From Lepidodermella squamata (lineage: Eukaryota > Animalia > Gastrotricha): 64,000 nucleotides of DNA. Below are positions 2,275-44,212 of this stretch, piece after piece. Each line of letters opens with the position of its first letter. The first letter of the stretch is position 1. Made by a program: the position numbers and the translations under genes. The stretch spans positions 2,852,001 through 2,916,000 of the forward strand of contig JBLDXI010000019.1 in NCBI GenBank assembly GCA_047495785.1. The letters are read 5' to 3'. The notes below the pieces were generated by a model that had not been told where the DNA came from, did no database searches, and saw only the letters and a list, made by a program, of their open reading frames with translations.

Positions 2275-5137
2275 CTATTTGAATTTCATTCCTTGGGTTT
2301 TGGTCGGGAGCATTTTACTTGCCTGTTGCATTTGCAGGGCAGGTCTTATTGGCGGCAGCTTCTGCTGGCCGACAGCGAGCATCGGCTGTTGTGCTAGCAT
2401 TCCTTGCCTGGGCGGCTGATGAGCTATAAATCCTGGCTGTTTAGGCGCTTGCATAGGCATCTGCATTACCGGAGCCTGCATCAGGGCTTTGCTTTTCGAT
2501 GCCTGAGCAAAGGTTTGCTCATAGTAGGGATTTTTCTTTTCCCAATTACGAAGGGTCGCCCCTACAGGTGTCACAGGTCTACGGTTGGAATTAGGCTTTC
2601 CGTCGCGGACACTCGCCTTCTTCTTGCACAGGCAAAAGAGTACAACACCCACAATGACGATGGCAACGATGCCACCAACAACGCCGCCAATTATGTAACC
2701 AAGATTTGGGATACCAGTAGCTTCGGAAGTACTGTTGCCAGGAGATGCAGTCGCTTTGTTCGTTGTAGCCGCATCCTCGCTGCTGCATGGATTGACAGTT
2801 GGCAGGCAAGTGGAAAACTCCAGAGGGCTGCCTATCTCAGCCAGCATCATGGAGGCCATATCAGGCTGACTTATAGCGGCCTGGAAATCGTTTTGCCCAA
2901 TCGAAGCTGGCTCAGTTGCCGCTCTTTTCCGACGTTTTGCATTCAACACACCGCCAGCATCGCAAAACTTCTTCGTCGTCGTTGAGCTGATAGTGTATGT
3001 GATTCTAAAACAGCAGCCTTTTTCAGTTTTCGAGGTATTGGCGTAGTTGGAATCTATGATGTCATCCGTGTTGCTGTAGTTGAGGTTCACATTTTGCTTC
3101 TTAGTATATCCAGGACAGCATATCGAGTAGTTCGCTGCGCATACTGAATTCAGTTTTTTGGCGACATTGTTCTTGATGATTCGTCGTATCTTGAGGAACT
3201 CGTCAATCTTAGGGACTGGTTTGTAGAGCAGATCGACACCCTTCGATTCTTCATCACCGGAGGGTGAACAGCGAGTCGGGTTGTCACATTGCTGATACTC
3301 TTTCGACCCGTCAACTTTCAGTCGCCATTGCACTCCGATGCTGCAAGTTGATGAGCAGGCGGACCAAAATGCGCTTGACAGGCCAGATGTAGGTGGAACC
3401 CAGGTGGTGAGATAACGATCCCCTTCAGTTAGTTTGTCAGCAGAAATCGTTGTAAGATTGCTGACGGAGACAAGACCCTTACTAGGTGTAGTTGAAGCCA
3501 CAGACTTGGCTTTTGTGGTAGCTTTTCCAGCATTTGTGCTAGTTGCTAGGTTACTTGTTGTAGCCTCAGACTGTGGTGAACTCGCCCCAGCTGCGGTTCT
3601 TGTTCCAGTGACAGTCGACGCAGATGAAGCGGTTGATGCCAAAGTAGCTGCAGGTGAAGACTTTGTTACTGTCGTGATTGCAGTTGGGCTGGTTGATGCT
3701 GATGAGGGAGCAGCGGTTGATGTGACTGTCCGCAAAGTCGATGTAGAAGGAGAAGTCTGACTTGAAGGCTGACTAGAGGACGCTGTTACTGCTGTAGTTG
3801 TTGATCTTGAAGTTGAAGTTGACAGCGACGTCTGGCTAGAAGTGGGAGTCCCACTAGCAGTTGACATCATAGTATTTGTCGAACTCGATCGAGTTGATGA
3901 AGTAGAAAGAGTCGTTGTCGATAGCGGCGTAGTTGTTGAAGATTTAGTAGTTGTCTGGCTAGAAGTAGTTGTTGACATGATAGTATTTGTGGAACTTGAT
4001 CGAGTGGATGTGGTTGATATTGTGGTTGGCGTGGATGAGGTCGTTCCACTAGCCGTCAATGCCCAGAAATCGAACTTTATCAACCTGACGTTGCCTGAAG
4101 GACGCAATTTCAAAAGAAGGTCGAAGTATTTATAGCGTAACTCACCGAGATCGCCGTTATCTGCTAACCATCTTGGTTTAGCTATTCCAGATGCAAATGC
4201 AGCTGCAGCTCCTGATACAGGAATGTCAGAGAAGCAAACTGATGCTGGAGTGCTTCCGTTGCTCGACAATGGGGCTATCGCCACCTGCGAACAGATAGAG
4301 GTTAGTCAAGAGATTTAGCCTTTCGGATGAGGATAGCCTCTTCGGCGCATTTAAAATTTTACAAGTCTCGTACCGTTAAAGAGTCATTGCTTAGCTGGAC
4401 GAATAACCGGAAAGAAGCCACGCCAGATGCTGTTGAGAACAAGCTCGATGAACCACATCCAGGGTTCGAAGTCACAATGAAAGGATAAGATCTGATTTCA
4501 CCAGTCAGCGCATTTGTCACAGACACCTTTGCGCTGGCGTTATAGCGCAACTCAAGCCAAACAGTCATCCCGGTGATTCCGCCAGGCGAAATGCTAGTTG
4601 GGACTGAGGAAATTTAGCTGTATTTTGATCGACTAGCCTAGGCAGGTAACTTACGAAATGTTGTTCCGTAACTGGATGAGGATAGGATGAAGCCTAATAG
4701 ACCATAATCGGCCGAGTCATTTACATAAGTTGACGTTATATCCATTTCAGCCCTAAAATTGCTGTCGGTTGTCGGGAAAGCCTGATGTAGAGAAACCAAT
4801 TACTGGATTATGTGCAATTGTTGTACTTTTTCACAAACGGAGGCATGATGGAGCCTTCCATACTGAGAGTTGGTGCTAGTGATCTCGAAATAAGCGGAAG
4901 TTTGGCTTGCTACTTCAAAGGTGCTGAAAGATGTTGAAGCGGCAGAGGCATTGAACGATAAGGCGGATCGATATGTCGGAGTTCCCGCCCACAGGTACGG
5001 CAATGGGAGCGCGGCCGTATTCGGTACCTGTGATATAGCTGAACAGCGACTGTTAACTGTTAATTCAAAAGTGAATCCTTTGAAATACCTGATTTCAGCA
5101 AGCTTAGGAAAATAAGACCTCGGATCATCATGCCCAT
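2275..5137 (-). CDS. Type-I membrane mucin-stalk protein, paralog 1 (signal peptide, A-type N-domain, S/T stalk, TSP1-like/Cys-rich module, furin site, TM, NPYY tail)
   Basis: Spliced by eye: signal exon MGMMIRGLIFLSLLKS, then exons ISQVPNT..., AFPTTDSNFRAEMD..., ...MTVWLEL...FRLFVQL, and the large 3' ORF 2275-4284, which contains a 51-nt in-frame intron at 4095-4145. Motifs WSACSSTCSIGVQWR, KRRKRAA, TM IIGGVVGGIVAIVIVGVVLFCLC and NPYY. Confidence 0.85.
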
Positions 5138-6490: not shown

Positions 6491-9361
6491 TTATTTGAAC
6501 TTCATTCCTTGCGTTTTGGCCTGGAACATTTTGCTTATTGGCTGCTTTTGAGGGGCAGCCGGTGCTCTCAGCGTTCCAATCGGCGGTAGCTTTTGCATGC
6601 CGGCCACTTGTTGGGGCTGTTGAACCATGAATCCTGGCTGTTTGGACGCTTGCATAGGAGCATGCATTAACGGAGCCTGCATCAAGGCTTTGTTTTTCGT
6701 CGCCTGAGCAAAGGTGTGATCGTAGTAGGGATTGCTCTTTTCCCAATTACCAAGTGTCGCCCCGACAGGCGTCGCAGGTCTGCGACCCTCTAAGCCGGCG
6801 GAATTCGGTTTTCCATCATGAATACTCGTCTTCGTCTTGCAACAGCAATAAAGGACTCCAACAAAAATGACAATAGCAGCTATGCCCCCAACAACTCCGC
6901 CGATTATATAGCCGAGATTAGGGTTACCAGTTCCTTCGGAGGTACTGTTTCCAGGAGATGCAGTCGTCTTGTACGCTGAAGACGCAGCATCCTCGCTGCT
7001 GCATGGATTGACAGTTGGCAGGCATGTGGAAAAATCCAGAGGACTGCCTATCTCAGCCAACATCATGGAGGTCATATCAGGCTGACTCATGGCGGCCTGG
7101 AAATCGCTCTGCGCAATCGAAGCTGGCTCGGCTGCTGCTCTCTTCCGACGCTTCGCATTCAACAAACCGCCGGCATCGCAAAACCTCTTTGTCGCCGTCG
7201 AGCTGATAGTGTATGTGATCCTGAAACAGCAGCCCTTTTCGGCTCTCGATGTGTTCGCATAGTTAGAATCGACGATCTCATCAGTGTTACTGTAGTTGAG
7301 GTTCACCGTTTGCTTCTTCGTGTAGCCAGGACAGCAAATCGAGTAGTTGGCTGCACATACTGAATTCAGTTTCTTGGCGACATTGCTCTTGATAATTCGT
7401 CGTATCTTCAGATAATCGTCGATCTTAGGCACAGGTTTGTAGAGCAGATCGACACCTTTTGACTGTTCATCACTTGAGGCTGAACAACGAGTCGGGTTGT
7501 CGCATTGTTGGTACTCTTTCGACCCGTCGGCCTTCAGTCGCCATTGCACTCCGATGCTGCACGTCGAGGAGCAGGCGGACCATAGTGAGCTAGAGAGGCC
7601 GCCCGAAGGTGGAATCCAAGCGTTCAGGTAACGATCGCCTACGCTGAGTTTGTCAGCAGTAATTGATGTTAAACTGCTGACTGACAAGAGGGCCAAATTT
7701 GTGGCTGTGGCAGTTATCGTCGGTTTCGACGTTGCAGTTACACCATTATCAGCTCCTCTCGAAGAGGTGCTCACTGCATTAGACCCGCTATCGGCCGAAG
7801 TAGTTGATGCCAATTTGCCACTCACTGTTGTTGTAGAGCTTGACGACTGGACAAACGCGCCTGTAGTTGGGTTTGCGGTTGAATCTGAACGACTTTGAGT
7901 TGATGTTGCGGCAGAAGTTGTGTTCGCAGTAGCCGCAGATGAATTCGTGTTCTGCTTCGTGGCCGTTGTAGAGACCGTGACAGTCGTAGTACCACTTGAT
8001 GTACCTTGGCGAGTAGTTGAAATCGAAGACGTCGATAGCGCCGTTGTCGATTTTGAATTCAAGGTTGAGCTTGACACCAAGCTACTCGTCGTCGATGGAG
8101 TTTTACCCGTACTACTAGTCTGGCTTTGGGTCATTGTTGATAGACCAGAGGTTGTGGTTGGCAGGACAGTCGAGGTTTGGCGGGTCGTTGTTGAGGTTGT
8201 AGCTGTGCTTGAAGTTACCGTTGTGCTCGACCGTGAAGTAGAAGAAGCTGCAACGGTTGTCGAGGAATAAATCTCAACCAAACTCCATACGTAACTCTTG
8301 ATTAGAACCAAGTTCGCTGTAAAATTAATTGCCATAAATCATGAAATAATTAGGATGAGCTGATTATTACAAAAGTTCCCGTTAAACCCAAGCCATCGGG
8401 ATTTAACCAGGCCCGTAGCTAATGCCGAGGCCGCTGCTGCGGGAAGGGATATATCGGCTATGCAAATTACGGTAACAGTCGCTCCATTAGCTGGCAGAGG
8501 GGCTAAAGCAACCTGAAAAGCACACGATAACGAATCCAACGATAGCGAAGTAATGAGGTTTGATTATGGCTCACTGTTAAAAAGTTGTTATTCAACTGCG
8601 CAATCAACCGAAACGACGAGGCCCCTGATTGAGAAGCGAAAATACTCGACGAGCCGCAACCCAGCAGAGACGAGGCGATCACTGGTGATAATGGCAGGAA
8701 ACCAGAGCCATTAGTCGTAACAGACGCGTAAATGCCACCTCCATAACCTAATTGCAAAGTGATCGTCAAACCATTGAGACCACCAGTTGAAACAGCGACA
8801 TTAGAACCTCCGTTTATCTCGATAGTTAAATTTGGATAATCTAGTTAGAGTGGAATTAATAGGTGCCAAGGTCAAATACAATTTGTCATAACCAACTTGT
8901 GCTTCCATACGATGTTGACGAGAGGATGAAAGCCGCAATAGCGTAGGATGCTGAGCCACTTACATAAGTCGTGTTCAAGTCCATCTCAATCCTGAAATTC
9001 GTCATACTCGAAGGAAAAGGCTTGAAGAAAAAAGTTACTGGAGTTAATCTTGTTCAAATCGAATCCCACCTCAATGTGATGAAGTCGCCCCAATACGTTT
9101 GAGGCATTAATGATTGTAATACCCTGAGCCTCAAAGCCGGCCACATCCACGGTACTGAAGGCTGCTTGCGACAAGTTAACTGCATCAAACGACAACACTG
9201 CCTGGAAAACAGGCGCTCTGGAATACGGAAGAGCCAGAGATGCCACATCTGGCGATTGGGCTTTAGCTGAAATTCATCAATAAACAAAATGATGTTTCGA
9301 GGCTGACTTAATATTTACCCAGTATCAGCGTTACAGTGAAGGTGAAACAAATTTGAAGCAT
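6491..9361 (-). CDS. Type-I membrane mucin-stalk protein, paralog 2 (A-type N-domain)
   Basis: Signal exon MLQICFTFTVTLIL|gtaaat. ORF pieces 8986-9246, 8503-8769, 8339-8539 and 6491-8335 are collinear with paralog 1, with the same C-terminal module, TM and NPYY. Confidence 0.85.
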
Positions 9362-11029: not shown

Positions 11030-13882
11030 CTACCTCATTCCTTGCGTTTTGGCCGGGAGCATTTTGCTTGCTGGCTGCACTTGTGGAACAGCTCTTATTG
11101 GCGGCAGCTTATGCTGGCCGACCGCAAACTTCGGCTGTTGAGCCATGAATCCTGGCTGTTTGGGCGCTTGCACAGGCATCTGCATTAACGGAGGGTGCAT
11201 CAAGGCTTTGCTTTTTGACGCCTGGGCAAAGGTTTGCTCATAGTAAGGATTACGCTTTTCCCAGTTACCGAGAGTCGCCCCAACAGGCGTCACGGGTCTA
11301 CGGCCCTCTGAGCTGGCGGAATTAGGCTTAGCTGCATGGATACTGGTCTTTTTCTTGCACAGGCAAAATAGTACTATACCCACAATGACAGTAGCAGCAA
11401 CGCCACCAACCGTTCCGCCAATTATGTAGCCGAGATTAGGATTACCAGCAGCGTCGGAGGTACCGTTGTTGCCAGATGATGCTGAGCCTTTGTAGACCGA
11501 AGAAGCAGCATCCTCGCTGCTGCATGGATTAACAGTTGGCAGGCACGTGGAAAAATCAAGAGGACTGCCTATTTCAGCCAACATCATTTGTGCCATATCA
11601 GCCTCAGTCATCGCTGCTTGGAAGTCTCTTTGACCGATCGAAGCTGGATCGGTTGCCGCTCGTTTCCGTCGTTTGGCATTCACTGAACCCCCTGCATCGC
11701 AGAACCGTTTCGTCGCAGTCGGACTAATTGTGTATGTGATCCTAAAACAGCAGCCCTTCTCAGTTTTTGACGTATTGGCGTAGTTGGAATCTATGATGTC
11801 ATCTGTGTTGCTGTAGTTGAGGTTCACCGATTGCTTCTTCGTGTATCCTGGACAGCAAATCGAGTAGTTGGCGGCACAAGCTGAATTCAGTTTCTTCGCG
11901 ACATTGCTCTTGATGATTCGGCGTATCTTCATATAGTCATCAATCTTAGGCACAGGTTTGTATAGCAGATCGACACCTTTTGACTGTTCATCACTTGAGG
12001 CTGAACAACGATTCGGGTTGTCGCATTGTTGGTACTCTTTTGACCCGTCGGCCTTCAGTCGCCATTGCACTCCGATGCTGCACGTCGAGGAGCAGGCGGA
12101 CCAAAATGAGTTCGATAGGCCAGAGGGAGGTGGAACCCAGCCAGTTAAGTATCGATCGCCCTCTCTAAGTCTATCGGCCATCACCGTTGCCAAATCGCCT
12201 ATGGAGAACAAGCTTGCGGCAGTGGAGGTTGTAGTTGCCAAGACTCTTTCCTTGGTTGTAATTGCTGTGAAACTGGCTTGAGTAATGCTCGAAGTTTGAT
12301 TCAGAGATTGCGTCGAACCCGTTCTTCCAGTGACAACTGATTCTGATGTAATCATAGCAGCTGTGGGTGAGCTGGTTGCTCGGTTAGTCGCTGCGCTGCT
12401 GGTGCTGGAAATCATTAAAACTGTTGTTGACATGGGATTCGTAGGTGTTGTAGTTTGAGAGGAGGAGAATGCTTTCATATTAGTCGACGTTGTAATTTGC
12501 CCTGTCGTAGTCGAACTAGTAATGACTGAAGACGAATCTGTCTTCGAAGTTGTTGAGGCAGAAGTTGCCTTTGTAGTTGTCGAAGCTGTCGATGACATGA
12601 AATTCGTTGTTGTGGAAATAGTCGAGCTCGTACGCGTTGAAGTCGAAGTCGTAGATGAGCTTGTCGTTGGATTGGTAACAGGAATCGTCGAGGTCGTTCG
12701 AGTAGAAAGTGTTGTTGTCGAACTACTGACTGCCGCAGTTTGATTAGCTCTCCAGAACAGCATGTTTCTTATTGCCACATTTCCTGGGAGGGATTGTGAG
12801 ATTTATTAGTGAGCTATGAGCTATGGTGTTGGTAAAGAGTATTACCGATTGGAAGGCCGCCATATAGACGAATCTTCGAGTTGACATTTTCCAAAGTAGC
12901 CCCCATGCCTGGAAGGTTAGTGCCACTGAAGCAAATCAGAGGCGAAGCCACGCAATATGAGCTAAGTGGCGCCATAGCAACCTGGGTTTAATCATATCGC
13001 TCGGGTTAGTTGCGTAATGGTTTTCAAATTCTAACTTACAGTCAACACGTCACTTAAAAGCTGAACGATCAGACGAAATCGTGAAACGCCCGACAGAGAA
13101 AAGATCGAGGCACATGTAGTTGAAGTTATGTTCTCTGCTCCGGGCAACCACCCTTCTGAACCTGTAGCGAGAAGCAGCCTACCTGCCGGCTTCAACTCTT
13201 GCCACAGCGATAAACCAGTCATGATATGATAGTACAGATACGAGCTGTTATACTCTGTAAATCGGGTAGATGAAGTGATTTGGGGATAACTGACGAAATT
13301 TTGCTCACCGTACGAAGCGCCTGTTGCCGAAAAGATGAAGCCAAACCACGAGTTGCTATTGGATAAATTGGCTGGGAACTCAACAGTGACGTCTGTCTCC
13401 AATCGCCAGCTGTTGGCATTAGCGGGCTGAAATGCCGGGAAATGGTTTGCATGCGTAGCTAGTAAGTAAAGGCGAACTTACAATTGATAACCATGCGCCA
13501 TTGCTGCGAATCTCGAATGCCGTACTTTCTTGCGCGGCGTCATAATTCAAAGCTACGCTTGCTGATGCGTTAGACGCCTTAACAGCGTCGAATGAAAAGG
13601 CGGGCGCATATGCAGCATTCCACCCAGGCAGAGGCAAAGAGGTTGTGTCTGGAGCTGGTGTCCAGTTTCTTGAACCTGCAAGCATAAATAATAACCCCTT
13701 ATTGCTTTCGATTTTAGCGATGTTACTTGGATTGCTGCAAGCTGAAGAAGTCGTCGACGAGGGGCGAGTTGTAGTTTGCGAATTACCTGGGAAAGAAGCA
13801 GCAAAACTCAACGTAGGAATACGAGATATCAGGACTTACCCAGTGCAAAAGTAGTGCCAAACACGAGAATATATTGAAACAT
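11030..13882 (-). CDS. Type-I membrane mucin-stalk protein, paralog 3 (B-type N-domain only; tail ends GMR*)
   Basis: Signal exon MFQYILVFGTTFAL|gtaag (13882-13840), then exons GNSQTTT..., ...WLSI|PANANSWRLETD...FRLIVQLLSDVLT, and the large ORF 11030-12778. Confidence 0.85.
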
Positions 13883-15900: not shown

Positions 15901-18900
15901 TTATTTGAACTTCATGCGCTGGGCTTGGAACATGTGGCTGTTAGGCAGCATTTGTGGAGGGGGCTTCGGCGCCATTGCTCCAAGAGGCGGGAGTTTTTGC
16001 TGTCCAGGATATTTCGTCAATGAAGGCCCGACATCATGCGGTCTGGGTTCAAGCTGAGTTCGAATAAATCCCTTTGAAGCGGCGTTTTGCATGAGGGCGT
16101 TGCTTTTGGGCCCTTGAGTAAGAATTTTATCATAGTAAGGATTACTCTTGTCCCATTTGCTAAGCGTAGTCCCAACGGGCGTTGAGGGCCTTCTATCATC
16201 AGAGACCACCGAATTACGCTTAACAACACTCGAGCTTCCCTTTTTCTTACAAAGGAGATAATAGAAGGCAATTACCACAATGACAACGAAAACAACTCCG
16301 CCAACAACGCCCCCAATTATAACGCCAAGGCTAGGGTTGGAGGCAGCTTCTGACGTAGTGTTTCCAGGTGTGGTTGCTTGATTGACAGAAGAAGCAGAGT
16401 CTTCACTACTGCATGGATTGACAGTTGGCAGGCACGTAGAAAACTCCAGAGGGCTGCCAATTTCAGCCAACATCATCGAAGCCATATCAGGCTCGGTAAT
16501 AGCGGCTTGGAAATCACTTTGACCGATCGAAGCCGGCTCGGCTGCCGCTCTTTTCCTACGTTTTCCATTCAGTGAGCCAGCTGCATCGCAGAACTTCTTC
16601 GTCGCCGTCGGACTAATTGTGTATGTGATCCTAAAACAGCAGCCCTTCTCAGTTTTCGAGGTATTGGCGTAGTTGGAATCTATGATGTCATCTGTGTTGC
16701 TGTAGTTGAGGTTCACAGTTTGCTTTTTGGTGTATCCAGGACAACATTTCGTGTAGTTGGCTGCACATGCTGAGTTAAGTTTCTTGGCGACATTGCTTTT
16801 AATGATTCGTCTTATTTTTAGGTATTCGTCAATCTTAGGCACAGGTTTGTAGAGCAGATCGACACCCTTCGACTGTTCATCACTGGAGGCTGAACAACGA
16901 GTCGGGTTGTCGCATTGTTGATACTCTTTCGAACCGTCAGCTTTCAGGCGCCATTGCACTCCGATGCTGCAAGTCGAGGAGCAGGCGGACCATAAAGAGC
17001 TTGAGAGACCGCTCGAGGGTGGCATCCACGCGTTCAGGTATCGATCACCCTCTTTGAGCTTGTCAGCCGTCACCGATGTCAAATTGCTAACGGAAACAAG
17101 AATAACAGTCATTGCCGTAGTGGCTGATTTTGGTTTAACTGTCGAGCTCGCCCCAGCATTGGCTGCTACACTACTAATAGTCTGCAAGCTTGTGCTTGTG
17201 GAAGTGTCAATAAGGGTTGAGGTCGATGCTGTTAGCGCATTGTTAGCTGATGTCGAACTTGGCATAGCTATTATCGCCGAAGTTCCCGATGTGGAATCTG
17301 AAGCCGACGATGAAGTTGACTGCGTTGCACTTCCGGTTTTTCCTGCAGTCGAGACTGCTGTGTTAGTTGAGCGCGTGGCAGTAGAAGATGCCCAAGTCGG
17401 CGTTTGGCTTGAACTTATAGATGTTGTCGAACGTGTTGACGTTGGCAGTGTTGCAGTTTGGTTTGTGGTCGCAGATGCCATGGATTTTTGGGTAAAAGGT
17501 GAACTGCTTGTAGAAAGTGTTCCATTCAAGTGCCAGAAGAACATGTTTCTCATGGTGGCATTTCCTGTATTTTGCCTTCAATCAAATCTATATCAAACTC
17601 AAACCTTGATAAAAAAACCTGCAGTTCCAAAGCTCGCATACAGACGGATCTTGGTACTCACATTCTCAGTAATAGCTCCCGCGTTAGGTAAGCTGACCCC
17701 ACTGAAACAAATCAAAGACGCCGCCATGCAATCCGAGTTCATAGGAGCCATAGCGACCTGAGTTTGGCAAAAATATTTCAAGGCATTATTTATTAGCAAC
17801 AAGGTACCGTCAACATGTCGCTCCAAAGCTGAACAATCAAACGGAATCTCGAAACACCGGTCGAAGTGAATAATGGGCTACAGGTAGTTGAAGTGAGATT
17901 GGGTCCATCAGGCAGCATCCCCGAGGAACCTGTAGACAGATAAAGCTTGCCAGATGGCTTCACTTCTTGCCAAATGGAAAGCCCGGTCAACGTATTGTAC
18001 GCCATGGACCCATCATTATTGTGCGCTAGAAGGTAAAGGTAAAGGTAATAAGGTAAAATATCCACTGATTGAGGTTCAAAACTGACGAAAAACTAACAAT
18101 AAATCACGCTGGTTGACGAAATGACAAATGCGAACCACGTATTGTATGATATATTAGTTAGGTATCTCGTCGTTACATCAGTTTCCATTCGCCAGTTACT
18201 TTCGTAGGCAGGCTGAAACGCATTTTTATAATTAGACGTTTCATTCGGCAAAATCATCGCACTCACAATCGATAGCCAACCTCCAGAGTTATTTACGCTC
18301 TCTGTCAGCTCAAATCCCAAAGAAGTTTGTTTTGCAAACAGATTAAGCATTGGACTTGCAGATGCATCCGAAGCTAGGGTGGTATCGAATGAGAAATTCT
18401 GAGCATAAGTGGCAGTTGAGCCGTCCAAACTCAGCGAGTCAATGTCAGGCGTTGGTGTCCAGCTTCTAAGAGCTGAAATAGAGATATGTTTACACGTTAT
18501 TCAGTCTAGAACAATTTACCGCTCTTTGAACTACCGCATATTGGTGTCGTAGTTTGAGGGGGAGTTGCAGTAATTCCGCCCGGTGATAGCTGCCAAAAAC
18601 GTTGGCCAATGACGGCCAATGTTGCTAGAAATGAATTAAATCTCAGTTGGAAATTAACGAAGTCCAATCTCTAATACAGTAGTTTCCGAAGAAAGAAACC
18701 CAGCGCGGTTTCGCACTTCCTGTTCCAATCGCAGTGCCTGCTATTGAAGGAACGGGGACATCAGAGAAGCATACTGCAACTGGGGTCGTCCCATTGGCTG
18801 GCAGGGGCGCTAAAGCAACCTAGGAAGGATAAAAGTCTAATAAGAATCGGAACTACATTTGAATCTTTACGAAAGAAATGCTCAAAGATTACTCAGCGAA

Positions 18901-27386: not shown

Positions 27387-30147
27387 TTAATTATACTTCA
27401 TTCGCTGCGATTGCGCGTGTGGCATGTTGGTCTTTTGCAGCATCCTTTGTGGAGGGGGCTTAAGCGTCATTGCAAGAGGTGGAAGCTTTTGCTGACCAGT
27501 CGGAAATTTCGTTGATGCAGCCCCGTAATCAAACTGAGATGGTTTAGGTATCTTTGAAGCTGTCGGTTGCAATGAGACGTTGTTTTTTGGCGCTTGAGTG
27601 AGCATTTGATCGTAGTAAGGATTACTCGTGTCCCATTTACCAAGTGTAGTCCCGACTGGCGTTGGTGGCCTTCGACGTCCAGATACCCCAGAATTAGGTT
27701 TCACGTCACCTGTGTTGTCTTTTTTCTTACACAAACAATACAAAATTACAACAACGATGACAAAAGCAACGATTCCCCCAACGGCGGCCCCGATTATTAC
27801 GCCGAGACTGGGGCTGGACGTGGTATCTGATGTACTGTTGCCAGGTTTATAGGCAGAGGAACCATCATCCTCGCTGCTGCAAGGATTGACAGTCGGCAAG
27901 CATGTGGAAAACTCCAGAGGGTTGCCTATTTCCGCCAACATCATCGAAGCCATATCAGGCTGACTCATCGCGGCCTGAAAATCGCTCTGCGCAATCAAAG
28001 CTGGCTCAGTTGCCGCTCTTCTCCGACGCTTCGCAGTCATTGAACCGCCAGCATCACAGAACTTCTTTGTCGCCGCTGAGATGATGACGAAGGTGATCCT
28101 GAAACAGCAGCCCTTTTCAGTTTTCGAGGTATTTGCGTAGTTCGAATCGATGATATCATCCGTGCTGCTGTAGTTGAGGTTCACGTTTTGTTTTTTCGTG
28201 TAGCCAGGACAGCAAATCGAGTAGTTGGCTGCACAAACGGAATTGAGTTTCTTCGCCACATTGCTCTTGATTATTCGTCTTATCTTCAGGTAATCGTCAA
28301 TCTTAGGCACAGGCTTGTAGAGCAGATCGACGCCTTTTGATTGTTCATCACTGGAGGCTGAACAACGAGTCGGGTTGTCGCATTGTTGGTACTCTTTCGA
28401 ACCGTCGGCCTTCAGTCGCCATTGCACTCCGATGCTGCACGTCGAGGAGCAGGCGGACCATGATGAGTTGGAGAGACCGCTCGAAGGTGGAATCCAGGCG
28501 GTGAGATAGCGATCGGCTTCGCTGAGCTTGCCAGCACTTATTGATGACAAATCACAGATGGAAACAACAGTTTGTGCTGTGCCCGTAGTACCAACAATGT
28601 TTGCTACGCTACTGATCGTCGCGGCCTTACTACCTACAGTAGTTCCACTAATCGATGATTGAGGAATAGTTGAGGCAGTTGCAGACAACATGTTATTAGC
28701 TGTTGTGGAACTAGCCACAGATGAGATAGTGGTAGTGCTAGAAGTCACATCCGACCGAGCTGACGCTGAATTTGACGGCGATGCACTTTCAGTTTTTGCA
28801 GCAGTCAAGACTGTTGTGCTCGTTGAACGTGTTGAAGTCTGAGTCGAACTTGTTTGACTTAGGGTTGATGTCGAAATAGGGTATGTTGTAGTTTGAGTAG
28901 TGGCTGCCCGCGTTGCGGAGTTTGTAGACGATATCGAAGTCATTGTTTGAGTCTTTTGGGTAGAAGATGAATCACTAGTTGAAAGGCTTGTCGTTGTAGG
29001 GGGAGTCGCAGTAAGTCCGCCCGGTGATAGCTGCCAAAACCGATGGTTGATGATGCCGAAGGTCGCTTAATATAGAGAAATCTCAGTGAGAAAGTAGTAA
29101 AACGCATTTTTACCTATGGTTCCAAAGAAAGAAATCCAGCGCGGTTTTGCAGCCCCAGTTCCAATCGCAGTGCCTGCTATCGAAGGAACGGAGACATCAG
29201 AGAAGCATGCAGCAACTGGGGTCGCTCCATTGGCTGGCAGGGGCGCTAAAGCAACCTAGATTAGCATAAATAATTTAATCTAAAACTCGTAACTACATTC
29301 TAATGCTGCGTTTAGGTCATTTCAAATAAATTTCAATTAAGTAATGGCTAGAACGGAGCTGGCTGTCTTACCGTCAAAAGATTGTCGCTCAATTGAGCAA
29401 TCAGTCTGAACAACGCTAAGCCGGATGGCGCAGTGAAAACGTTTGATAAGCCGCAGCCAGGCTTCGACGTTGCAATAACGGGTAGCAACGGCAGGGTTCC
29501 AACAGCGTTACTTGTGGCTGAAGCGTATACTCGACCTCCGTAGCCCAACTCTACAACAATCGACAGTCCATTGATGCCTGAGCTCGTAATAGAAAGATTC
29601 CCTAAAAAGTCGATGACTAAAATCAGCGACAGGTTGCATAAAGTTAAATTACCGCTGTAGCTATCGTTGCTAATGAAGTTGTAATATCCATACGATGTTG
29701 ACGACAAAGTATAAGCTGCTTTTGCGAACGGAATGTCGCTATAAGTTGAACTTAAATCCATTTCAACTCTGAAATTTGTTGCGGTAGAGGGCACAGCCTG
29801 CATAAATAAATTATGTGGTCATAAATCAGTTTCGTCCGAGATAACTAGCCGTTGCAAAATTAATTCGCCCAACTGTGGAGGTATAGTTGTCGGTTAATGC
29901 GATGCCCTGGGTGCTTTGGGATGCCACATCGAACGTGGTGAATTTTGATGACGATACGTTTGCCCCGTCGAAGGATACCACTTGCTGGAAAATAGGCGCT
30001 CCAGCGTAAGAATAAGGCAAAGCCAGAGATGCTGTATCTGGAGACTGAGCCGCCCCTGATGGAAACTTTCATCTCCCGATACTGCATTGAAAAAGGTTTG
30101 AACATACCCAACGCCCATGTTACTGCCAATGCGAATAACGTGTTCAT
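27387..30147 (-). CDS. Type-I membrane mucin-stalk protein, paralog 5 (A-type N-domain)
   Basis: Signal exon MNTLFALAVTWAL; ORF pieces 29826-30020, 29348-29803 and 27387-28943; KRRRRAA, TM and NPYY. Confidence 0.85.
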
Positions 30148-30862: not shown

Positions 30863-31261
30863 CAGCTTCGGATTTTTACCAAGTTCAATTTTAGGGCGCT
30901 TGCACTAAATCAGTCGTTATTTTTTGGATGAATAGTTGTTTCTCAGAAACCTGTTTTTCGCTTTGTATATAAAATCGAAAATAATCATCTGCAGCATGTC
31001 TCACCCTGGATATTCGGCGACAAGGTGTTTAGTACCAATTCTCAATGAAACAGTGTGCATCATTTGGTCATTTTCTGAACCTTTGAAGTAATTGATACCA
31101 ACAATTGTGTAATTGAGACGACGACAAAAATTTTGAATGAAAAACAGAACATTTTAATTATTTTGAAACGTGATAAATAAACGCTATATAAACCGGTTAA
31201 TTATGACTATACGTATTTTTAAACTATCAGTTTTTTTAGAACGGGGGAAAGGAATGTCTTT

Positions 31262-34200
31262 TCACAGTTTTTCTTCCAGAACTTCTTCGTCGAAAACTTC
31301 CCCTTCTTCCCCTTGGGTAGTAGTAGCCTTTGTCGTAGTAGTAGTGGTGGTAGGCCGAGTCGAAGTCGTGGTGGTCCTCGTTGTAGTAGGCCTCGTGGTA
31401 GTGGTAGTAGAAGTGCTCGTAGGTTTAGTAGTCGTAGTCGTCGGCCTGGTAGTTGTCGGTGTTGTACTGGTAGTCGATGTTGTTGTTGTTGTATTCCATG
31501 CTACATTCACCACAGGCGCGTCAGCTACCTGTATTCTCGGCTCTTTCTTGCAGTCGTCGATGAAGGGCACGGAGACCAGATCGGCGACGCCGCACAGGTT
31601 CGGCTGCGACGGGTCCTGGCGCAGCATGCGGAAATAGCCCAGTTCGCCCCAGTTCGTTCCCCAGCTGTTCCGAATCCGCCAGCTATTGAGGCAACAATAA
31701 ATCGACAATAAATCGACATAAACAATAAAGAGGGACATTTTTAAAATAAATTATTGATTCCAATCCTCATCAACAAAAACCAAAATAGACACAGGTTTAT
31801 CGAAATAAAGCATAAAATTGAAAATGTATCTTCTAGCTTGACATAAAATATTCCTTTGCAAAAATATTAGGCGGCAAGGATTTAGTGAATTTTTAAGTTT
31901 TTGTAAAAAATTGCTAAAAATTGCTAAAAAATTATCAGCGATTTCAAGGCAAATCATCAGTGACATATCATCATTAATTAATAAAAATTCTGATTAAAAT
32001 AAAATTCAAGCCGTAAATTTAATATATTTACAATTGATAATTAGCAGTGACAAATGAGCAATAAATCACAGTTCATCAAATTCATACGAAAAATATTGAA
32101 ATACGTAAAATTCTTAAGAAATTCGAATAATCAACGGCCAAAAATCATTGTTCGAAAGTCCCTGATGATTCGCCACTAATGACGCGCTGAAATGTCACTG
32201 CTCACAGCAGTCAGTGATTATTTGACCTACATTTTCTAAATTATAGAGAACCTCGGATAATGCGAATTTCGTCTTTCAGAATATTTTTTTAGCAGAACCA
32301 AATCTGCACGTTGCGGATAGATAAGCCAGGGTCGCTTTTCGAATACCGTATTTGTTCCAATACGCAGCCCGGCCTACTAAAATTTCAACCTCGAAATTTT
32401 GAAAATTTTAAAAATTAATTTTCTCGTGAATCGTTCATTTTTCATGCTTTCAAACCAACTTGACCCATCAACCCTGGGCTACTATAAGGGATGGGTGATT
32501 ATTAGTGAATGGGCTACTATTGGAAAAAATACGGTATTTCTAAAAAAATTAACACACTGTGGAAATCCTATGGTGAAGAATGCGGCTAATGAATTTTACG
32601 CTGAATTTTAAAATATGATTTTGTTTACATTTTGCTGATCATCCTTGAAGTTTCGAAAAGTGGTTTTAGGCCCATTGAAAATTCCAGAATTTTGTTCCGC
32701 TAAAACTAAGACCCTTTGTCCATATTACTTTCATCAGCCGACAAATCGGATTTCCGTATTAGATATAACATACAATTTACGCTAGTAAAAACTCACTATT
32801 TTTGATTAGTCTCAGGATCGATGCCGAAGCCGACTAGAAATACGGCGTGGTTGAGCCCGGCGACGGGGCGTTTACACTGCGTCGTCGTGTACACGCCGCC
32901 TATGTACTGGTACAAATCCTCGAGCACTTCGATGCCGATCGCCAGCGGGCCGTTGTCCATGAGAAACCGCGCCAGTTCGCACTCGCCGCCGGTGAAGTTG
33001 CGATGGCCCCGCAGCCGGCCGTACGCCGGCTTTGTCGCGTCAAATTGGCACGGCAGTTTCTGATTGTTGCGGTAAGAATACTGGTCCCAAGTGTTGAGAC
33101 CCGGCACAACTTCAAGGTATTTGAATACATTGGTCCTGAAAATAAATACATAGAAATATAATCGAAAATTGAATTATTAAATTGAATATTTTAATATTTG
33201 AGATAAATTGGGCTATTATTCAGGAATTTTTTTTAATTTCAAAATTTGAAGTATTTCGAACTATTTTCTCTTGTTTACCTACATGAGGCCACCGAAACAG
33301 CCGTAGTTGTTGAAGATTTTCGTGCAATCGACGATCTGTTGAACCGACAGGCGGAGATCCTTAATGCCACACTTCAACGCCAGTTGACTCTCAACAGCAG
33401 CTAAAAATAATTAGAGAAAAAAATCATTTAAAATTTCAATTTCAATTTTGAGCACATTTTCGACATTCAAAATGTTGTCCAAGGGCATTTGAGCAATTAT
33501 GACGCTTCAAAAATGAATCAATAGGTCCAAATTTGGTGCCTCTTATGGCTCACCACCAAGCTATTTTTCCGAGAGTTATTATCATTATTAATGTTATTTA
33601 TTATAGGTCAAACATAGATTAGGTCGAAGCTTATGGCCATGGCCGAGTTCGGTAATTACTTCAACAACTCATGGGTAAATCCGCCAGTTCCTCCCACCAG
33701 TTCCCAGTGGTATGAAGGAGCAGCGCCGTTTACGAGTGACTCGACCAAGGCACGAATCGAGATTTCAACGCTACCTAAACGGCCAGGAGGCAGCTCTCGA
33801 TGATAAAACTCTTGATTTTTTTTTTCTGGACCAATTTGCGCAACCCTAGCAACATCAATCATGCCTCAGTCGCCCAGGAGTCGAAAATTCGATTGGAAAC
33901 CTCGAAGGCGGGCAAAATATTTCCAAATCAATTGAAGCGTGACGATTTCCCGGTTCATACATTGTTAACTGCCGACCTACCCGGCCCGGCATGACGGCAC
34001 CGCCTTGGAAGAGGTTGAGTGGGCTCGCTTTTAGAAAGCTATCAGGAATCCGGCGGCAGTATTCAACGACTGGCCCACCTATCGAGAGTTCACTCGGACT
34101 TGCTGCTATACAGCGCGGTACAAAGATGCGGGGCGTACTAGAGCTGCGGAGGTTTTCAGAAGAAATATTTTCACTGCTGCCACTCGCTCGGCTTCGAGTT

Positions 34201-37055
34201 ACAATCGGGCCGCCGTCGAATTTCCGACTACACTACGCAGAAAACGAACACAGAAAATGAACGTATGAAAACGAGGCTGGCTGTCGCAGGGGGCGTCCGC
34301 TCTCATCCGAACTCCGAACTTGCGCTAAAATTTTCAGCGGCCTCTGATATCTCCTTAAAAAAACCTTTTTGGGACAAAATTTGGCATATGCATTCCCTTA
34401 GAGCTGCTCTTTCAGTAATTGAAAGAAAAATAAAGGTTCTAAAATAGGTTTCGGCAGGACATTCACCTGAAATTCACCTGAAGATTATGTGGTGAGTTTG
34501 GACCCAAAAATGCAGTTTTCTAAAATTAGTTTGAGAAAATTGTGTTCATAATTTTTCTCAAAGTTCAGCCCATCACAATGAAATTTCGTTTGCAAATCAG
34601 CGGACAAAATAACTAGCTAATTACCAAATTTTATGAAAAATTTCGCTAAAAATATTTTTCAAAGTTCAAAATTCAGAAATTCAGAATTTTCGATGAATTT
34701 TCTTGAAATATCCTTGCAAATCTGTGGGAATTTACTCGATTTTACCTGCGGAGACGACGCCGTAGCAACTGCCGCAAGATTTTTGGTCATACGGCGCCAT
34801 GACAACGCCCTTCTCGACCCAGTCGAAATAGTTCGGCAGCCCATCGCAGCCATCAGAGCGCAACAGCGAGCCCTGGCGCTGGCGCTCACTCGGCGGCGGA
34901 GCAGCCAGGCCCAACGTGCCTCGCCTCGCATCCGGCTTCATGCCAGCAAATTTCGTGATACCCCTCGGGTGCTTCTCGAGACCGGCCTGGTACCGCTCGT
35001 TGTGAGCAACGATTCGCTGGTAATTGATCTCGAAAATGTCCTGCGCCTCTTCGTCTTCGAATTTCGCTATGTCTGGGAATTTTTCACAGTATTTCTTCCA
35101 TTCGACTTCGATGGAGTCGTAGATAGGAGCTTTTCGGAGCAAACGCCGGTTGCCTCGGGGCACCAGGCCGATTTCGGCCAGCGAGTCGAAGCCTTTGAAG
35201 TGGGCGTCGACTTCGGATGAGTTGAGGCCGAAATTGCACACGAGAACCTCGTCGATGTAACCGTAGAATGAGCCGAATTGCTGGTCTGACCCGATTGTTA
35301 GTGGTGTATGAGTCGTGGCAAGCCTTTGTTCTGTCCCCATAGTTGCTACTAGCTCCTAGAAAAATCAAGAAATAACGAACTTCAAACCAAAACTATATAA
35401 ATTTCCTTTAAAAATGTGAATTATTCGAAATTCGAATTTTTGAAATTAAAATAGTTTAAAATTAAAAACAAAATTGAAATTTTGAAAATCTCAAAATATT
35501 TAAAAAATTCTAAACATTTCGGAAACAATTGAAATTTTGAAAATTGGTTTTGATTGGTGTCGTAACTTTAAAATTTCGAGAACAAAATTTCAATTGTGAT
35601 TTCAATTTTTGAATTAATGATAAAAGTTATTCAAAATTGTTCTGCCTACATTATTGAGGTGGACGTAGGTCATACTCGCGTCGTGGACAACGCAGACCTG
35701 TTGAAAATCGGCGCCATTCGGTCCGATAATTTTGTTGACATCAACACTGATCGTCGAGTTCGATTTCGGATTTTTAAAGGCCAAGTTTGCTTCGACAGCA
35801 TCGCCAATTAGGGCTGCTATGATTATCGAAAATTCCGAGCCATCGGCGTCCTTGCTGTTCGAAACGAGGCCGCCGGTTGATGAGCAGGATGTCGTATTCG
35901 TTGGATCCAAACCGCATCTAAATTATGGCTTTGGTTACGCATCGTCAAGTATAGAAACGTTTACGGATAGGTACGAAAATGAACAATCGAAAATTTAAAT
36001 ATTTTCCAATATCATTTAAAATTATAAGAGAACTTCGAATTTTCTACTTGAAATTAAACATCTATTGAATTTAAAAAATGTTTGAATTTGAAATTTTTTA
36101 TTTGGAATTTAAAATTATTTTTAAATTTCAAAATTTCAAGAATTTCAAACCTGTAGAAAAAGCAGAAAGATGCCGAAGTTGCCATGTCGAAGTTTTTGAA
36201 CGCCGGAACTTCCAGCCAGCCTCCGAACGTTTTCAACGAACCGGAACCACGAGCTTTGTGCGCGAAACTGACTTCAGCCGCGCCGACAATCGACGTGGCA
36301 ACTTTTGCCGATGAAGAATCTCTAGCATCTTGGTCGAAATTCAAATACAGCGAACACTGCCTCGGCTGATTTAAATTGTGGTCAACAAAATCGGAACAGC
36401 TGCAGGTATCGAGGCGAAACGCCGAGCCAGGCGCGCATGGCTGAATTTTCGAATTGTCCGTGTTTTCTAGGTCAATTAATTTGAACTCATCGTGGTGATC
36501 TTCCACTGAGCCCAGGTAATTTCCATAAGAATCTCGGCATAGAGTTGAATTTATTTGAATCGGCGGCATTTGCGTGGTTGGCGGCGAGAATTTTCGATTA
36601 TTCACGCATGGCTGCGTGCAATTTTCGTCGGACTCGCATGAGCAGGTCTCAACCTGGAACCGGGTTCCATTCGGGCAGCAAAACGGGTAGCTGATCTCGT
36701 TAGCGCAGACGAAAAATGAATTGCAAGAAATTTTCGACCCGTAGCAGCCATGCGTGGCTGTGTCCTCGTTTCGACACGGGTCTGAGCAGGGCGAATCTGG
36801 GTTCTCAGGTACACACTGCAGGTGAAGGTCGTGCCAAAATAGGCCCTGGGCGCATTTTCTCAGGTACCCGATCGCATTAGTCTCGTTCAAATAAAAGCAT
36901 TGGTAATATTGGTGGCAGTCAAGCGGATCGGCGTATAAATCTAGCTGATTGCGGCGGTTTGAAATTGAGAAGCAAAATTTATTAGGATCAGGCGCTGTTC
37001 TAGCAATAGAAATTGCACTTGTTGCAGACAAAAGTAAAAAAATTGAAATAATCAT
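31262..37055 (-). CDS. Secreted multidomain papain-family (C1A) protease: signal peptide, CBM14 x2-3, LamG/ConA-like domain, I29 propeptide, C1A domain, Thr-rich/acidic tail
   Basis: Six exons, frame-consistent: 37055-36151, 35917-35650, 35355-34746, ~33400-33283, ~33135-32797 and ~31682-31262. Motifs YADPLDCHQYYQC...CAQGLFW, LYLNFD...LTIG...FYGYIDEV, ERFNIN-like IFEINYQRIVAHN, QKSCGSCY, NHAV and NSWG. Confidence 0.88.
32346..32534. mobile_element. Intronic CCGTA-family MITE (shorter, inverted relative of 590-1000)
   Basis: TA|CCGTATTTGTTCCAATA ... TATTGGAAAAAATACGG|TA; subterminal sequence shared with 590-1000. Confidence 0.75.
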
Positions 37056-37192
37056 TTGCTAGGGTTGATGAAATTGTGGGCGGAACGTGCGAGGATACGC
37101 TTCACTGATCCGGTCACGCGACAACAGGGCACCTGGTGTTTTCGATTGCGAAATCAAGCACGGGCGAGGAATTTTTTTCTATACGGCAAGAC

Positions 37193-37203
37193 GGCACGTG
37201 CGC
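37193..37203. promoter_or_regulatory. E-box-containing motif GGCACGTGCGC upstream of protease gene 1
   Basis: An identical 11-mer lies upstream of protease gene 2 at 42799-42809. Confidence 0.4.
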
Positions 37204-37909
37204 CGAGTGGTGTGATGTCTGAAGTTCTAGAAAAATAACCTTAATACGTTCTAAAAATCAAAATAATAAAAATCGGACAAAAATCGAATTCTTCAGAAAA
37301 ATCAGTATATACTCGAAACTTATTAAATTCGAACAATGAAAGCTTTTCTTATTTCCTGCAATTTATCAAGAATTTTTTTATTTCTGCCCGATTTCTAGCG
37401 ATTCGACATATCTTTTTGGTAACCTTGGACGGTGGTAAATTGCCGTCTCTCATTAGCATATTCAACAGCCTCATGAATGACAATATTCGCCCTTGAAATC
37501 GCGGACAAATTTCGTAGAAATTTCTTTTTGGATCTCCAGAAAAAATTAAATCCTTCGCAGTCGCATACCGAATTTGTTCCAATAGTAGCCTCAATTCAAT
37601 TCGCTGAAAATCGCCCGTATTCCTAATACATAATATAGCCCTGGTCGTCCGTTAAAAAAAAATTGTAAATGAAAGATTCACTAAAAAATATGTTTCGAAT
37701 TTTTCAAAAGTTCCGAGGTTCAAATTTAGATACCTGGTACTAGGAATCTTCGTACGGATTTCCTAGGTGACCCCGTATCAAAAAAATTATATAAATAATC
37801 ACATAATTTATTGTAAGTCAATCGCTGATAATCATGAATATATCGTCAAAATAAATTGCAGTCAAAAAGCTCGTCAAAATATGTTGCGGCAGTTTGCAAG
37901 AAATCCAGT

Positions 37910-43337: not shown

Positions 43338-44212
43338 TCTTTTTTCAGCAGCAGAATACTTTTTTCTGCAGCAGATACTTTTCCCAGCAGCAGATACTTT
43401 TTTCAGCAGCAGGTTATACTTTTTTCAGCAGCAAATTTCAAAATATCGATTTTCATTAAAAAAATGTAACCATTTTGATAGACACGATTTCCTGAGTTCA
43501 AATATGTATACATATTTCGTTATAAGCAGCAACCGCGCCTAAAATGATTTATTTCCATATACTCGTCATTACTCTTATTAGATTTAACATCAGAGAATGG
43601 AAAGTCAGTTAATTCAGTCTGTTCTATCAAGAAAAATTCAGCGGCCTAGGGCCATGTAGTGTGCACCCGTGTAAAACAAGGATATAGTCCCTATTCGCCT
43701 TGACGAACGTCTACGGCGTTAAAATCATCGTCTTTACTGAAAACAGCAAGATTGAAATCTTTGAAATCAAGATTGAAACGCCGTAGACGTTCGTCAAGGC
43801 GAATAGGGCCTCATTACCTGCCCAATAGCCTGGGCGCCTCAGTTTCTGTACTGCAATAGAATCGTTCTTGGTGTAACCACGCCCAGGAGACTCCTTCTCA
43901 GCAACACCGGCCATAAACGGCATCAAATCATCTTCATTTGCCATCATCCACTCCACTACTTGCTGCCGCATAGTGATATGATCCTCCTGCGAGCCATTCA
44001 TCAAAAGGGCAAACGCCCGAAGTGCGCAGTTATGTATATGTATACATATTTGAACTCAGGAAATCGTGTCTATCAAAATGGTTACATTTTTTTAATGAAA
44101 ATCGATATTTTGAAATTTGCTGCTGAAAAAAGTATAACCTGCTGCTGAAAAAAGTATCTGCTGCTGGGAAAAGTATCTGCTGCAGAAAAAAGTATTCTGC
44201 TGCTGAAAAAAG
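43338..44212. mobile_element. Foldback-like element with ~175-bp near-perfect inverted arms whose outer parts are tandem ~20-bp units
   Basis: 43338-43515 is the reverse complement of ~44037-44212; unit ttttt(t/c)cagcagcagata. Confidence 0.75.
43638..44031 (-). pseudogene. Disrupted OTU deubiquitinase domain inside the foldback element
   Basis: NCALRAFALLMNGSQEDHITMRQQVVEWM (Cys box, lacking the usual DG), YWAGNEALFALTNVYGVSI, and an out-of-frame His box SLFYTGAHYMAL after an internal inverted duplication. Confidence 0.7.

Follow-up and report, generated by a model that had tools for sequence, protein, structure and literature searches.

A single expressed gene of Lepidodermella squamata joins a CBM14-LamG module to an apparently active papain-family protease precursor

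In Lepidodermella squamata we found a single gene that is expressed, spliced, and subject to purifying selection and that fuses a module of CBM14 units and a LamG domain to what is apparently a complete and active protease precursor of the cathepsin-L type (the positions of its parts in the window, i.e. the whole 64-kb stretch of DNA analyzed, are collected in Table 1). The encoded protein, a modular zymogen predicted to be secreted, comprises, in this order, a signal peptide, three CBM14-type units, a Laminin_G_3-type domain, a basic linker, an I29 propeptide, the C1A domain, and a Thr-rich tail. On balance, the CBM14-LamG part probably serves to place the latent protease on a chitin or glycan matrix, where removal of the propeptide would release cathepsin-L-like activity locally.

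Table 1. Parts of the fusion gene and a repeat in its fifth intron (positions in the window)
Feature	Position	Strand	Basis and remarks
Whole gene	31262..37055	-	six exons, 886 codons and stop; ORF phases, GT..AG introns, exon-only RNA-type contigs
Predicted signal peptide, aa 1-19	36999..37055	-	hydrophobic N-terminus by eye, no predictor; orthologue start similarly hydrophobic
CBM14 (peritrophin-A) domain 1, aa 39-90	36786..36941	-	Pfam PF01607, 29.6 bits
CBM14 domain 2, borderline, aa 102-145	36621..36752	-	PF01607, 21.0 bits, E 3.7e-4, just below cut-off
Degenerate CBM14-like Cys-rich unit 3 (4 Cys), aa 173-220	36396..36539	-	without Pfam match; kept in all relatives
LamG (Laminin_G_3-type), first part, end of exon 1	36151..36359	-	aligns with LamG region of P0106, P0079, P0055
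Exon 2, LamG middle	35650..35917	-	homologue alignment; X2 contig coverage
LamG last strands, start of exon 3	35164..35355	-	Laminin_G_3 positions 108-150 of 151, 16.3 bits, E 0.011; 56% identity to P0003
Basic linker GNRRLLRK between LamG and propeptide	35131..35154	-	possible convertase site; ANRRSPKK in orthologue
Cathepsin-L-type propeptide (I29), aa 467-563, EIFNIN variant of ERFNIN	34840..35130	-	Pfam I29, E 7e-4
Mature C1A start in exon 3: Gln582 (34783-34785), Cys588 (34765-34767), Tyr589	34746..34839	-	Pfam; junction 34746/33400 in X2, X3
Exon 4, C1A	33283..33400	-	Peptidase_C1, E 6e-7; both junctions in RNA-type contigs
Exon 5, C1A: His730 (32847-32849), extra Cys686 (32979-32981)	32797..33135	-	Pfam E 2e-13; cathepsin K 1vsn, E 1e-9; junctions in RNA-type contigs
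Exon 6, C1A end: Asn752 (31667-31669), Trp754	31553..31682	-	Peptidase_C1, E 6e-9
Thr-rich mucin-like tail (aa 808-870) and acidic end (aa 871-886)	31265..31501	-	sequence; orthologue without tail
High-copy repeat inside intron 5, non-coding for the gene	32232..32813	.	X1 word depth 2200-4000 vs ~100 elsewhere

The six minus-strand exons (37055-36151, 35917-35650, 35355-34746, 33400-33283, 33135-32797, and 31682-31262) give an ORF of 2661 nt encoding 886 aa, with GT..AG boundaries at all five introns and no stop in the spliced frame. Transcript evidence comes from runs X2 and X3, whose RNA-type contigs are confined to exons and match three splice joints exactly (31682/32797, 33134/33282(+1), and 33400/34746); exon 2 (35650-35917) is covered by X2 contigs, which end at 35649. 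The first-pass annotation placed the LamG end, the prodomain and the catalytic Cys within one exon, and the boundaries 35355-34746 proved exact; it also called for a check for transcripts that split the module from the protease, and the X3 contigs instead run unbroken from position 35318 in the LamG tail as far as the catalytic Cys (34746). Nearly all of the listed exonic differences are synonymous (24 of 25), and the tail shows in-frame length differences between runs (+6 at 31334 and +3 at 31403). The joints between exons 1 and 2 and between exons 2 and 3 are absent from the listed contig junctions, which is the point in favor of an annotation artefact or a decaying gene, i.e. two adjoining genes, or a pseudogene, mistaken for a single gene; these joints have zero X2 intron depth, matching phases, and intron positions common to the orthologue described below. 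We consider such an artefact extremely improbable and agree with the earlier view of a single gene, given the open frame of exon 3 that spans the fusion, the RNA-type contigs covering it end to end, the stop-free spliced frame, the synonymous bias, and the colinear orthologue. Within the 64-kb window we found no paralogues of the gene and no Rfam match; genes of the STAND/AAA type lie 9 kb from it.

The orthologue is carried by metagenome contigs L001-L003, which belong to another organism; it is colinear with the L. squamata gene, shows 47% identity, and has two intron positions in common with it. It starts with a signal peptide-like segment followed directly by CBM14, with no VWA domain, as in L. 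squamata, and it keeps the Gln residue and the CGSCY, NHA and NSWG motifs, while the ERFNIN-type motif reads EIFNIN in L. squamata and ERF-T-IN in the orthologue. The colinearity, the retained catalytic residues, the shared introns, and the synonymous bias together indicate an old fusion that selection maintains.

For the N-terminal module, Pfam was run on the separate exon pieces rather than on the joined 886-aa chain, with cut-offs of 22.1 bits for CBM_14 and 27.6 bits for Laminin_G_3. Unit 1 possesses the six-cysteine CBM14 profile and is the only one of the three above the cut-off. Thus, of the "two clear and one degenerate" CBM14 domains proposed earlier, one is clear and the third is indeed degenerate, while the second is only borderline (21.0 vs 22.1 bits). 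The LamG signal is weak on the exon pieces of the gene itself, where the tail alone scores. Homologues align to the gene model over aa 31-449 (E 2e-96) and aa 19-459 (E 2e-80), with a third at E 5e-47, and homologues of the whole LamG region exceed the Laminin_G_3 threshold (44.2, 42.7, and 39.9 bits), which makes the LamG assignment firm. The module was also modeled with AlphaFold, using the homologue P0106 in place of the protein itself (13-row alignment). The model matches the three-peritrophin-domain protein EHEP (8in6, E 3e-7, low TM) and also resembles the chitin-bound effector Avr4 and ConA-like jelly rolls; with a mean pLDDT of only 60.7, these fold matches lend weak support.

Analysis of the relatives of this module reveals that it is found fused to trypsin-like domains, as a stand-alone unit, or behind a VWA domain (the true Pif-like arrangement). 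The module tree contains three supported clades: cathepsin-linked (two genes), trypsin-linked (P0079, P0151, P0122, L023, and L025 are CBM14-LamG-trypsin proteins), and stand-alone/VWA-linked. The VWA domain was found only in L026 and L030, which are VWA-CBM14-LamG genes among the non-protease relatives. The "Pif-like" label of the first-pass annotation therefore holds for the module, which is related to L026 and L030, and not for the gene, which is no member of Pif/BMSP because the defining VWA domain is missing. Pif/BMSP proteins of molluscs and other lophotrochozoans (VWA-CBM14-LamG) have in common with the gene product the CBM14 units followed by a Laminin_G_3-type domain; in contrast to them, it has no VWA, lacks the acidic/basic low-complexity crystal-binding region (no Asp/Lys/Arg-rich low-complexity region is seen in its sequence), and continues after LamG into a protease. 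That CBM14+LamG proteins are not proteases, as was stated earlier, overlooks the sister clade, whose members carry this module attached to trypsin-like domains; the L. squamata gene itself has no Pfam match to the Trypsin (S1) domain.

In the protease half, the I29 propeptide scores 20.3 bits, below the Pfam cut-off of 24.4, and aligns with the proregions of procathepsins L, S, and K, over ~97 aa, and with that of triticain (E 3e-10 to 8e-5). Peptidase_C1 (PF00112) matches exons 3-6 with 21.6, 30.2, 51.2, and 36.8 bits (cut-off 20.7), together covering profile positions 1-219. Cathepsins K, H, and L are nearest to the catalytic part, which has no large insertions. All the catalytic features named in the first-pass annotation (Cys, His, Asn, the oxyanion Gln, and Tyr following the Cys) are present, with Gln582, Cys588, His730, and Asn752 in the usual motifs (equivalents of Gln19, Cys25, His159, and Asn175) and the catalytic residues kept in the orthologue. 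Tyr589 is compatible with catalysis, because cathepsin C carries a CGSCY motif and yet is active. Compared with procathepsins L/K/S/H of the ERFNIN subfamily, the protein has a propeptide that can be aligned with theirs and bears an ERFNIN-type motif, the same Gln/Cys/His/Asn, NSWG, and three standard disulfide Cys pairs, and no insertions of the occluding-loop type; it differs in ~450 aa of three CBM14 units and LamG preceding the propeptide, in the Thr-rich tail, in Tyr instead of Trp after the catalytic Cys, and in an extra Cys pair, C561/C686, which is common to the gene and its orthologue. Other C1A zymogens have also added non-catalytic domains, namely cathepsin F (cystatin-like), plant RD21 (granulin), and the insect 26/29-kDa protease; we know of none among these with chitin-binding or LamG domains.

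How such a zymogen might work can be outlined as follows. The CBM14-LamG module would bind a matrix of chitin or of some other glycan, such as that of the jaw, eggshell, cuticle, or gut lining, and thereby deposit the latent protease on it; the propeptide would then be removed, either by the protease itself under acidic conditions or by a different one. Because the module lies N-terminally to the propeptide, activation would in the simplest case free the active enzyme from its anchor, though at neutral pH the propeptide, itself bound to the matrix, may continue to hold or inhibit the enzyme. S1 zymogens usually retain the N-terminal region on the active enzyme through a disulfide, while the cathepsin L zymogen sheds its propeptide; here, a C561-C686 bond could keep the anchor attached to the enzyme. 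A digestive enzyme of the gut lumen, which the module and the mucin tail would attach to chitinous prey or to a gut lining that contains chitin, would agree with the frequency of cathepsin-L-like digestive proteases in invertebrates, with CBM14 being a peritrophic-matrix domain, with the digestive cathepsins L (3qt4 and 9hjy) among the PDB neighbors, and with the Thr-rich tail; however, the orthologue has no such tail, and an anchor placed on this side of the propeptide would not retain the active enzyme, so that we find this role very unlikely.

Judging from the sequence, cleavage at the conserved basic linker could separate the two halves early, before or at secretion. In the extreme case, the gene would encode a two-in-one precursor, cut by a convertase at NRRLLRK in the secretory pathway into a Pif-like matrix protein and a free procathepsin L, made in equal amounts at the same place, with the protease never anchored. 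The basic cluster is indeed kept in both orthologues (NRRLLRK and NRRSPKK) and absent from the trypsin-linked and stand-alone relatives, and it recalls the dibasic RMKR site at which Pif is cleaved into two working proteins, although Pif is cut before its LG part and the site discussed here follows LamG (PMC11291548). However, the motif departs from the canonical furin site, R-x-[KR]-R, and its conservation is seen in two sequences only, so that we rate the two-in-one precursor as rather unlikely.

With the matrix-deposited zymogen retained as the preferred reading, close parallels are Anopheles Sp22D, which binds chitin, and Drosophila Tequila, which is induced by infection; both are likewise secreted and have peritrophin-type chitin-binding domains located N-terminally to a protease zymogen (PMC1761132). 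In these proteins and in the trypsin-linked relatives the protease has a chymotrypsin fold, in contrast to the papain fold found here, but it is the trypsin-linked relatives that carry the very CBM14-LamG module of the gene. By analogy, the module might sense foreign chitin (of fungi, microsporidia, or parasite eggs), with the protease acting as an effector or as a step in a cascade. The properties of Sp22D and Tequila, the trypsin-linked sister clade, and the nearby STAND/AAA-type genes point in this direction, but neighborhood by itself is weak evidence. Moreover, papain-type enzymes are, to our knowledge, not components of immune cascades in animals, and an immune role appears to us unlikely. 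A broader proposal, which we offer as a speculation of similarly low probability, is that the lineage has wired the CBM14-LamG glycan/chitin recognition unit separately to papain-type and trypsin-type proteases, which together would act outside the cell in recognition and proteolysis, either in defence or in the controlled opening and remodeling of chitin structures, with the C561-C686 disulfide tethering the module to the active papain-type enzyme. If true, such a matrix-tethered cathepsin would have no known counterpart elsewhere.

As to whether the architecture is already common in databases, a possibility raised in the first-pass annotation, no chain among 1.84 billion representative proteins matched both the LamG tail and the propeptide/protease, and the protease design was not found described in the literature searched. 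Apparent N-terminally extended cathepsins (P0002, P0005, P0006, P0010-13, P0021, P0028, and P0095) turned out to be tandem I29/C1 repeats or unrelated fusions with no CBM14/LamG. Word-index protein searches, a method nearly blind to this family, returned only P0079 itself and P0151 for the P0079 query, no match for exon 1, and nine proteins for the alignment A3, none of which also contains a protease domain in its chain. Scanning the JGI metagenomes with the LamG-tail alignment yielded 18 loci of generic, probably bacterial Laminin_G_3 with no CBM14 or C1, and feature searches of the ESM Atlas retrieved generic LamG clusters only.

Proteases of the papain family normally reside in lysosomes or are secreted as free enzymes. 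A papain-type protease that is joined to a chitin-matrix module, and kept so in more than one species, would represent a novel means of placing latent cysteine-protease activity on an extracellular scaffold, and it extends the Pif-like module beyond biomineralization. The parallel trypsin-linked family provides a natural domain-swapping experiment, in which one targeting unit is combined with two catalytic chemistries and with two different consequences of zymogen activation. In a small spiralian, these proteins would be candidates for the remodeling of jaw, eggshell, or gut lining, or for antifungal defence, and may offer a ready-made design for chitin-targeted proteases.

Six-frame translation of positions 31000-37300 revealed six stretches of open frame, all on the minus strand, which could be joined at canonical GT..AG sites into a frame of 2661 nt (886 codons) with one stop, the terminal one. 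The exon in which the first-pass annotation had located the LamG end, the prodomain and the catalytic Cys recurs with exactly the same boundaries (35355-34746) in the rebuilt model, and nothing essential had been overlooked in that reading. A Pfam run on each exon piece (CBM_14 cut-off 22.1 bits) recovered one CBM_14 unit above the cut-off and a second slightly below it, while a third unit with four cysteines obtained no Pfam match in this search. Exon 3 alone matches the tail of Laminin_G_3 (E 0.011), Inhibitor_I29 (E 7e-4) and positions 1-36 of Peptidase_C1, and the latter domain continues through exons 4 (E 6e-7), 5 (E 2e-13) and 6 (E 6e-9). The catalytic set comprises Gln582, Cys588, His730 and Asn752, with Tyr589 directly following the cysteine, and the protein ends with a Thr-rich stretch of 60 residues and an acidic tail.

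Features of the cathepsin-linked gene, its orthologue and a separate tandem family in the window (nucleotide positions refer to the window unless stated otherwise)
Feature	Position	Strand	Remark
Window gene, exons E1-E6	37055-36151, 35917-35650, 35355-34746, 33400-33283, 33135-32797, 31682-31262	minus	GT..AG joins
CBM_14 unit 1	aa 39-90		Pfam 29.6 bits
CBM_14 unit 2	aa 102-145		Pfam 21.0 bits
Third four-cysteine unit	aa 173-220		
C561	34846-34848	minus	three residues before predicted mature N-terminus; cysteine also in orthologue
Gln582			catalytic set
Cys588	34765-34767	minus	catalytic
C686 (in GECELA)	32979-32981	minus	Ala119 in cathepsin K; cysteine also in orthologue
His730	32847-32849	minus	catalytic
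Asn752	31667-31669	minus	catalytic
Orthologue exons	contig L001: 6457-7340, 7401-7671, 7728-7958, 8010-8497, 8558-8729, 8788-9180		rebuilt
Five tandem paralogues (ORFs)	2275-4284, 6491-8335, 11030-12778, 15901-17553, 27387-28943	minus	

The gene model is corroborated by contigs from two public sequencing runs, X2 and X3, which are confined to the exons and skip 31682/32797, 33134/33282 (cut +1) and 33400/34746; read on the plus strand, the skipped segments have CT..AC ends. These skips coincide exactly with the model junctions E5/E6, E4/E5 and E3/E4, so spliced RNA is the sole possible source of the contigs. Overlapping X3 contigs run from 35318 to 34746, i.e. from the LamG tail via the linker and the propeptide to the catalytic cysteine, which bears out the earlier assertion that the fusion is no gene-model artefact. 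X2 also covers exons 1 and 2, and its depth in the two upstream introns is zero; the rows listed do not include the joints E1/E2 and E2/E3. Synonymous third-position changes account for 24 of the 25 exonic differences listed between the window and the runs, and indels in the Thr-rich tail have lengths divisible by three; thus, the gene is under purifying selection in the modelled frame. This tail (31313-31501) varies in length from run to run through in-frame insertions (+6 behind 31334, +3 behind 31403). Intron 5 harbours a high-copy repeat (32232-32813), whose word depth in the run X1 is 2200-4000 vs ~100 around it, and which shows numerous loose ends and internal joints there.

Exon 3 (LamG tail, propeptide and catalytic Cys) served as the query for a full HMMER scan across 1.84 billion representative proteins, which yielded 256 matches, none below 1e-30. 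Among the 150 of these that were listed and re-scored against the whole model, none combines the module with the propeptide or protease in one chain, in a library where eukaryotic genes from metagenomes are called in pieces. Long matches with upstream extensions turned out to be tandem I29/C1 proteins or unrelated fusions. The best LamG-side match among those listed is an 82-aa fragment (P0003) encoded on metagenome contigs L001-L003, in which CBM_14, this fragment and two pieces of Peptidase_C1 are encoded in succession on the same strand. The rebuilt orthologue has 812 aa, is colinear with the window protein at 47% identity, and retains every module cysteine, the Gln, CGSCY, NHA and NSWG; it lacks the Thr-rich tail. 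Two intron positions are common to both genes (FCFFYR|CGLDP and NN|ELV) and the remainder differ. The CBM14-LamG-cathepsin fusion is therefore older than the divergence of two rather distant organisms, or else of two ancient paralogues. At the end of L001 a second CBM14/LamG-type gene begins (17714-17991, minus strand), with a LamG tail 50% identical to that of the window gene.

Exon 5 is closest to the chains of cathepsins K, H and L, with a nearly gap-free alignment, and the proregion in exon 3 aligns with triticain and procathepsins L, S and K, starting near their N-termini. By these alignments the protease part is a full-length cathepsin-L-like zymogen of the ERFNIN type (EIFNIN here), devoid of the exopeptidase-type insertion. 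The Tyr following the catalytic Cys is conserved in the orthologue, and cathepsin C, an active enzyme, has the same CGSCY. An extra cysteine pair, C561/C686, is kept in the orthologue and missing from cathepsin K; it may form a fourth disulfide tying the end of the propeptide to the enzyme.

The CBM14-LamG module has other partners. In the homologues P0079, P0151, P0122 and P0019 the LamG tail is followed by an IVGG-type trypsin domain, and their contigs (L023, L025), from the same metagenomes as L001, encode CBM_14, Laminin_G_3 and Trypsin in this order on one strand. In the trypsin-like domain of L023 (7025-7345) GADAGTP stands in place of the expected GDSGGP, which puts alanine at the position of the catalytic serine, and this domain is probably that of a protease homologue without catalytic function. 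P0106 and P0152, both from transcript-like contigs, are complete proteins of the CBM14-LamG type, while P0153 and P0072 are parts of VWA-CBM14-LamG genes with the Pif-like design proper. The metagenome organism bearing the orthologue has at least two such protease-free genes (L026, 546-2659; L030, 1135-3274), which is in keeping with a spiralian host. A maximum likelihood tree of ten modules contains three supported groups: trypsin-linked (100/100), cathepsin-linked (window and L001; 100/99) and stand-alone or VWA-linked (87/94), hence each protease class seems to have been joined to the module once. The label "Pif-like" given by the first-pass annotation thus holds for the relationship of the module, which shares a tree with VWA-CBM14-LamG genes, and does not extend to membership in the Pif family: Pif proper combines a VWA part with chitin-binding and LG parts and undergoes cleavage at RMKR (PMC11291548), whereas the window gene has no VWA. 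The basic linker (NRRLLRK in the window protein, NRRSPKK in the orthologue) could, by analogy to Pif, be a convertase site separating the two halves early. Given this linker and the extra cysteine pair, both present in the orthologue as well, release of the enzyme from its anchor upon activation, as proposed in the first-pass annotation, is one possible outcome beside early separation and a lasting disulfide tether.

An AlphaFold model of P0106, built from a 13-row alignment, is weak (mean pLDDT 60.7; 64-88 in the three N-terminal units). Its nearest Foldseek match is EHEP, with three peritrophin domains (8in6, E 3e-7), followed by ConA-like jelly rolls (toxin receptor-binding domains, laminarinases, LG domains and pentraxin); Avr4, a chitin-bound CBM14 effector, was matched as well. 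These predicted similarities support the reading of the module as three CBM14-type units and a LamG-type sandwich.

The five tandem ORFs elsewhere in the window (518-669 aa each) are paralogues of one another, with pairwise identities of 55-74%. Each combines a mucin-like N-terminal region rich in Ser/Thr with a conserved C-terminal region of ~400 aa, for which no Pfam match was obtained. The ORF-poor 8.6 kb between the window gene and the STAND genes contains an isolated 97-aa ORF (43711-44004, minus strand), which may represent part of an OTU-type cysteine protease. An immune role of the window gene would be in line with the STAND-type genes nearby and with the insect chitin-binding serine proteases Sp22D and Tequila (PMC1761132), both of which are suggestive only; a digestive role is a further alternative to a function on the matrix.

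Our literature search found no paper describing the combination of CBM14, LamG, propeptide and C1A domains, and word-index protein searches are nearly blind to this module family. The window gene appears to be related to two known kinds of proteins, modular chitin-binding proteases and extended C1A zymogens. It encodes a chain of the secreted type, in which a module of the glycan-binding type precedes a latent cathepsin; the module would deposit the zymogen on a chitin-containing matrix, where loss of the propeptide would yield local protease activity.
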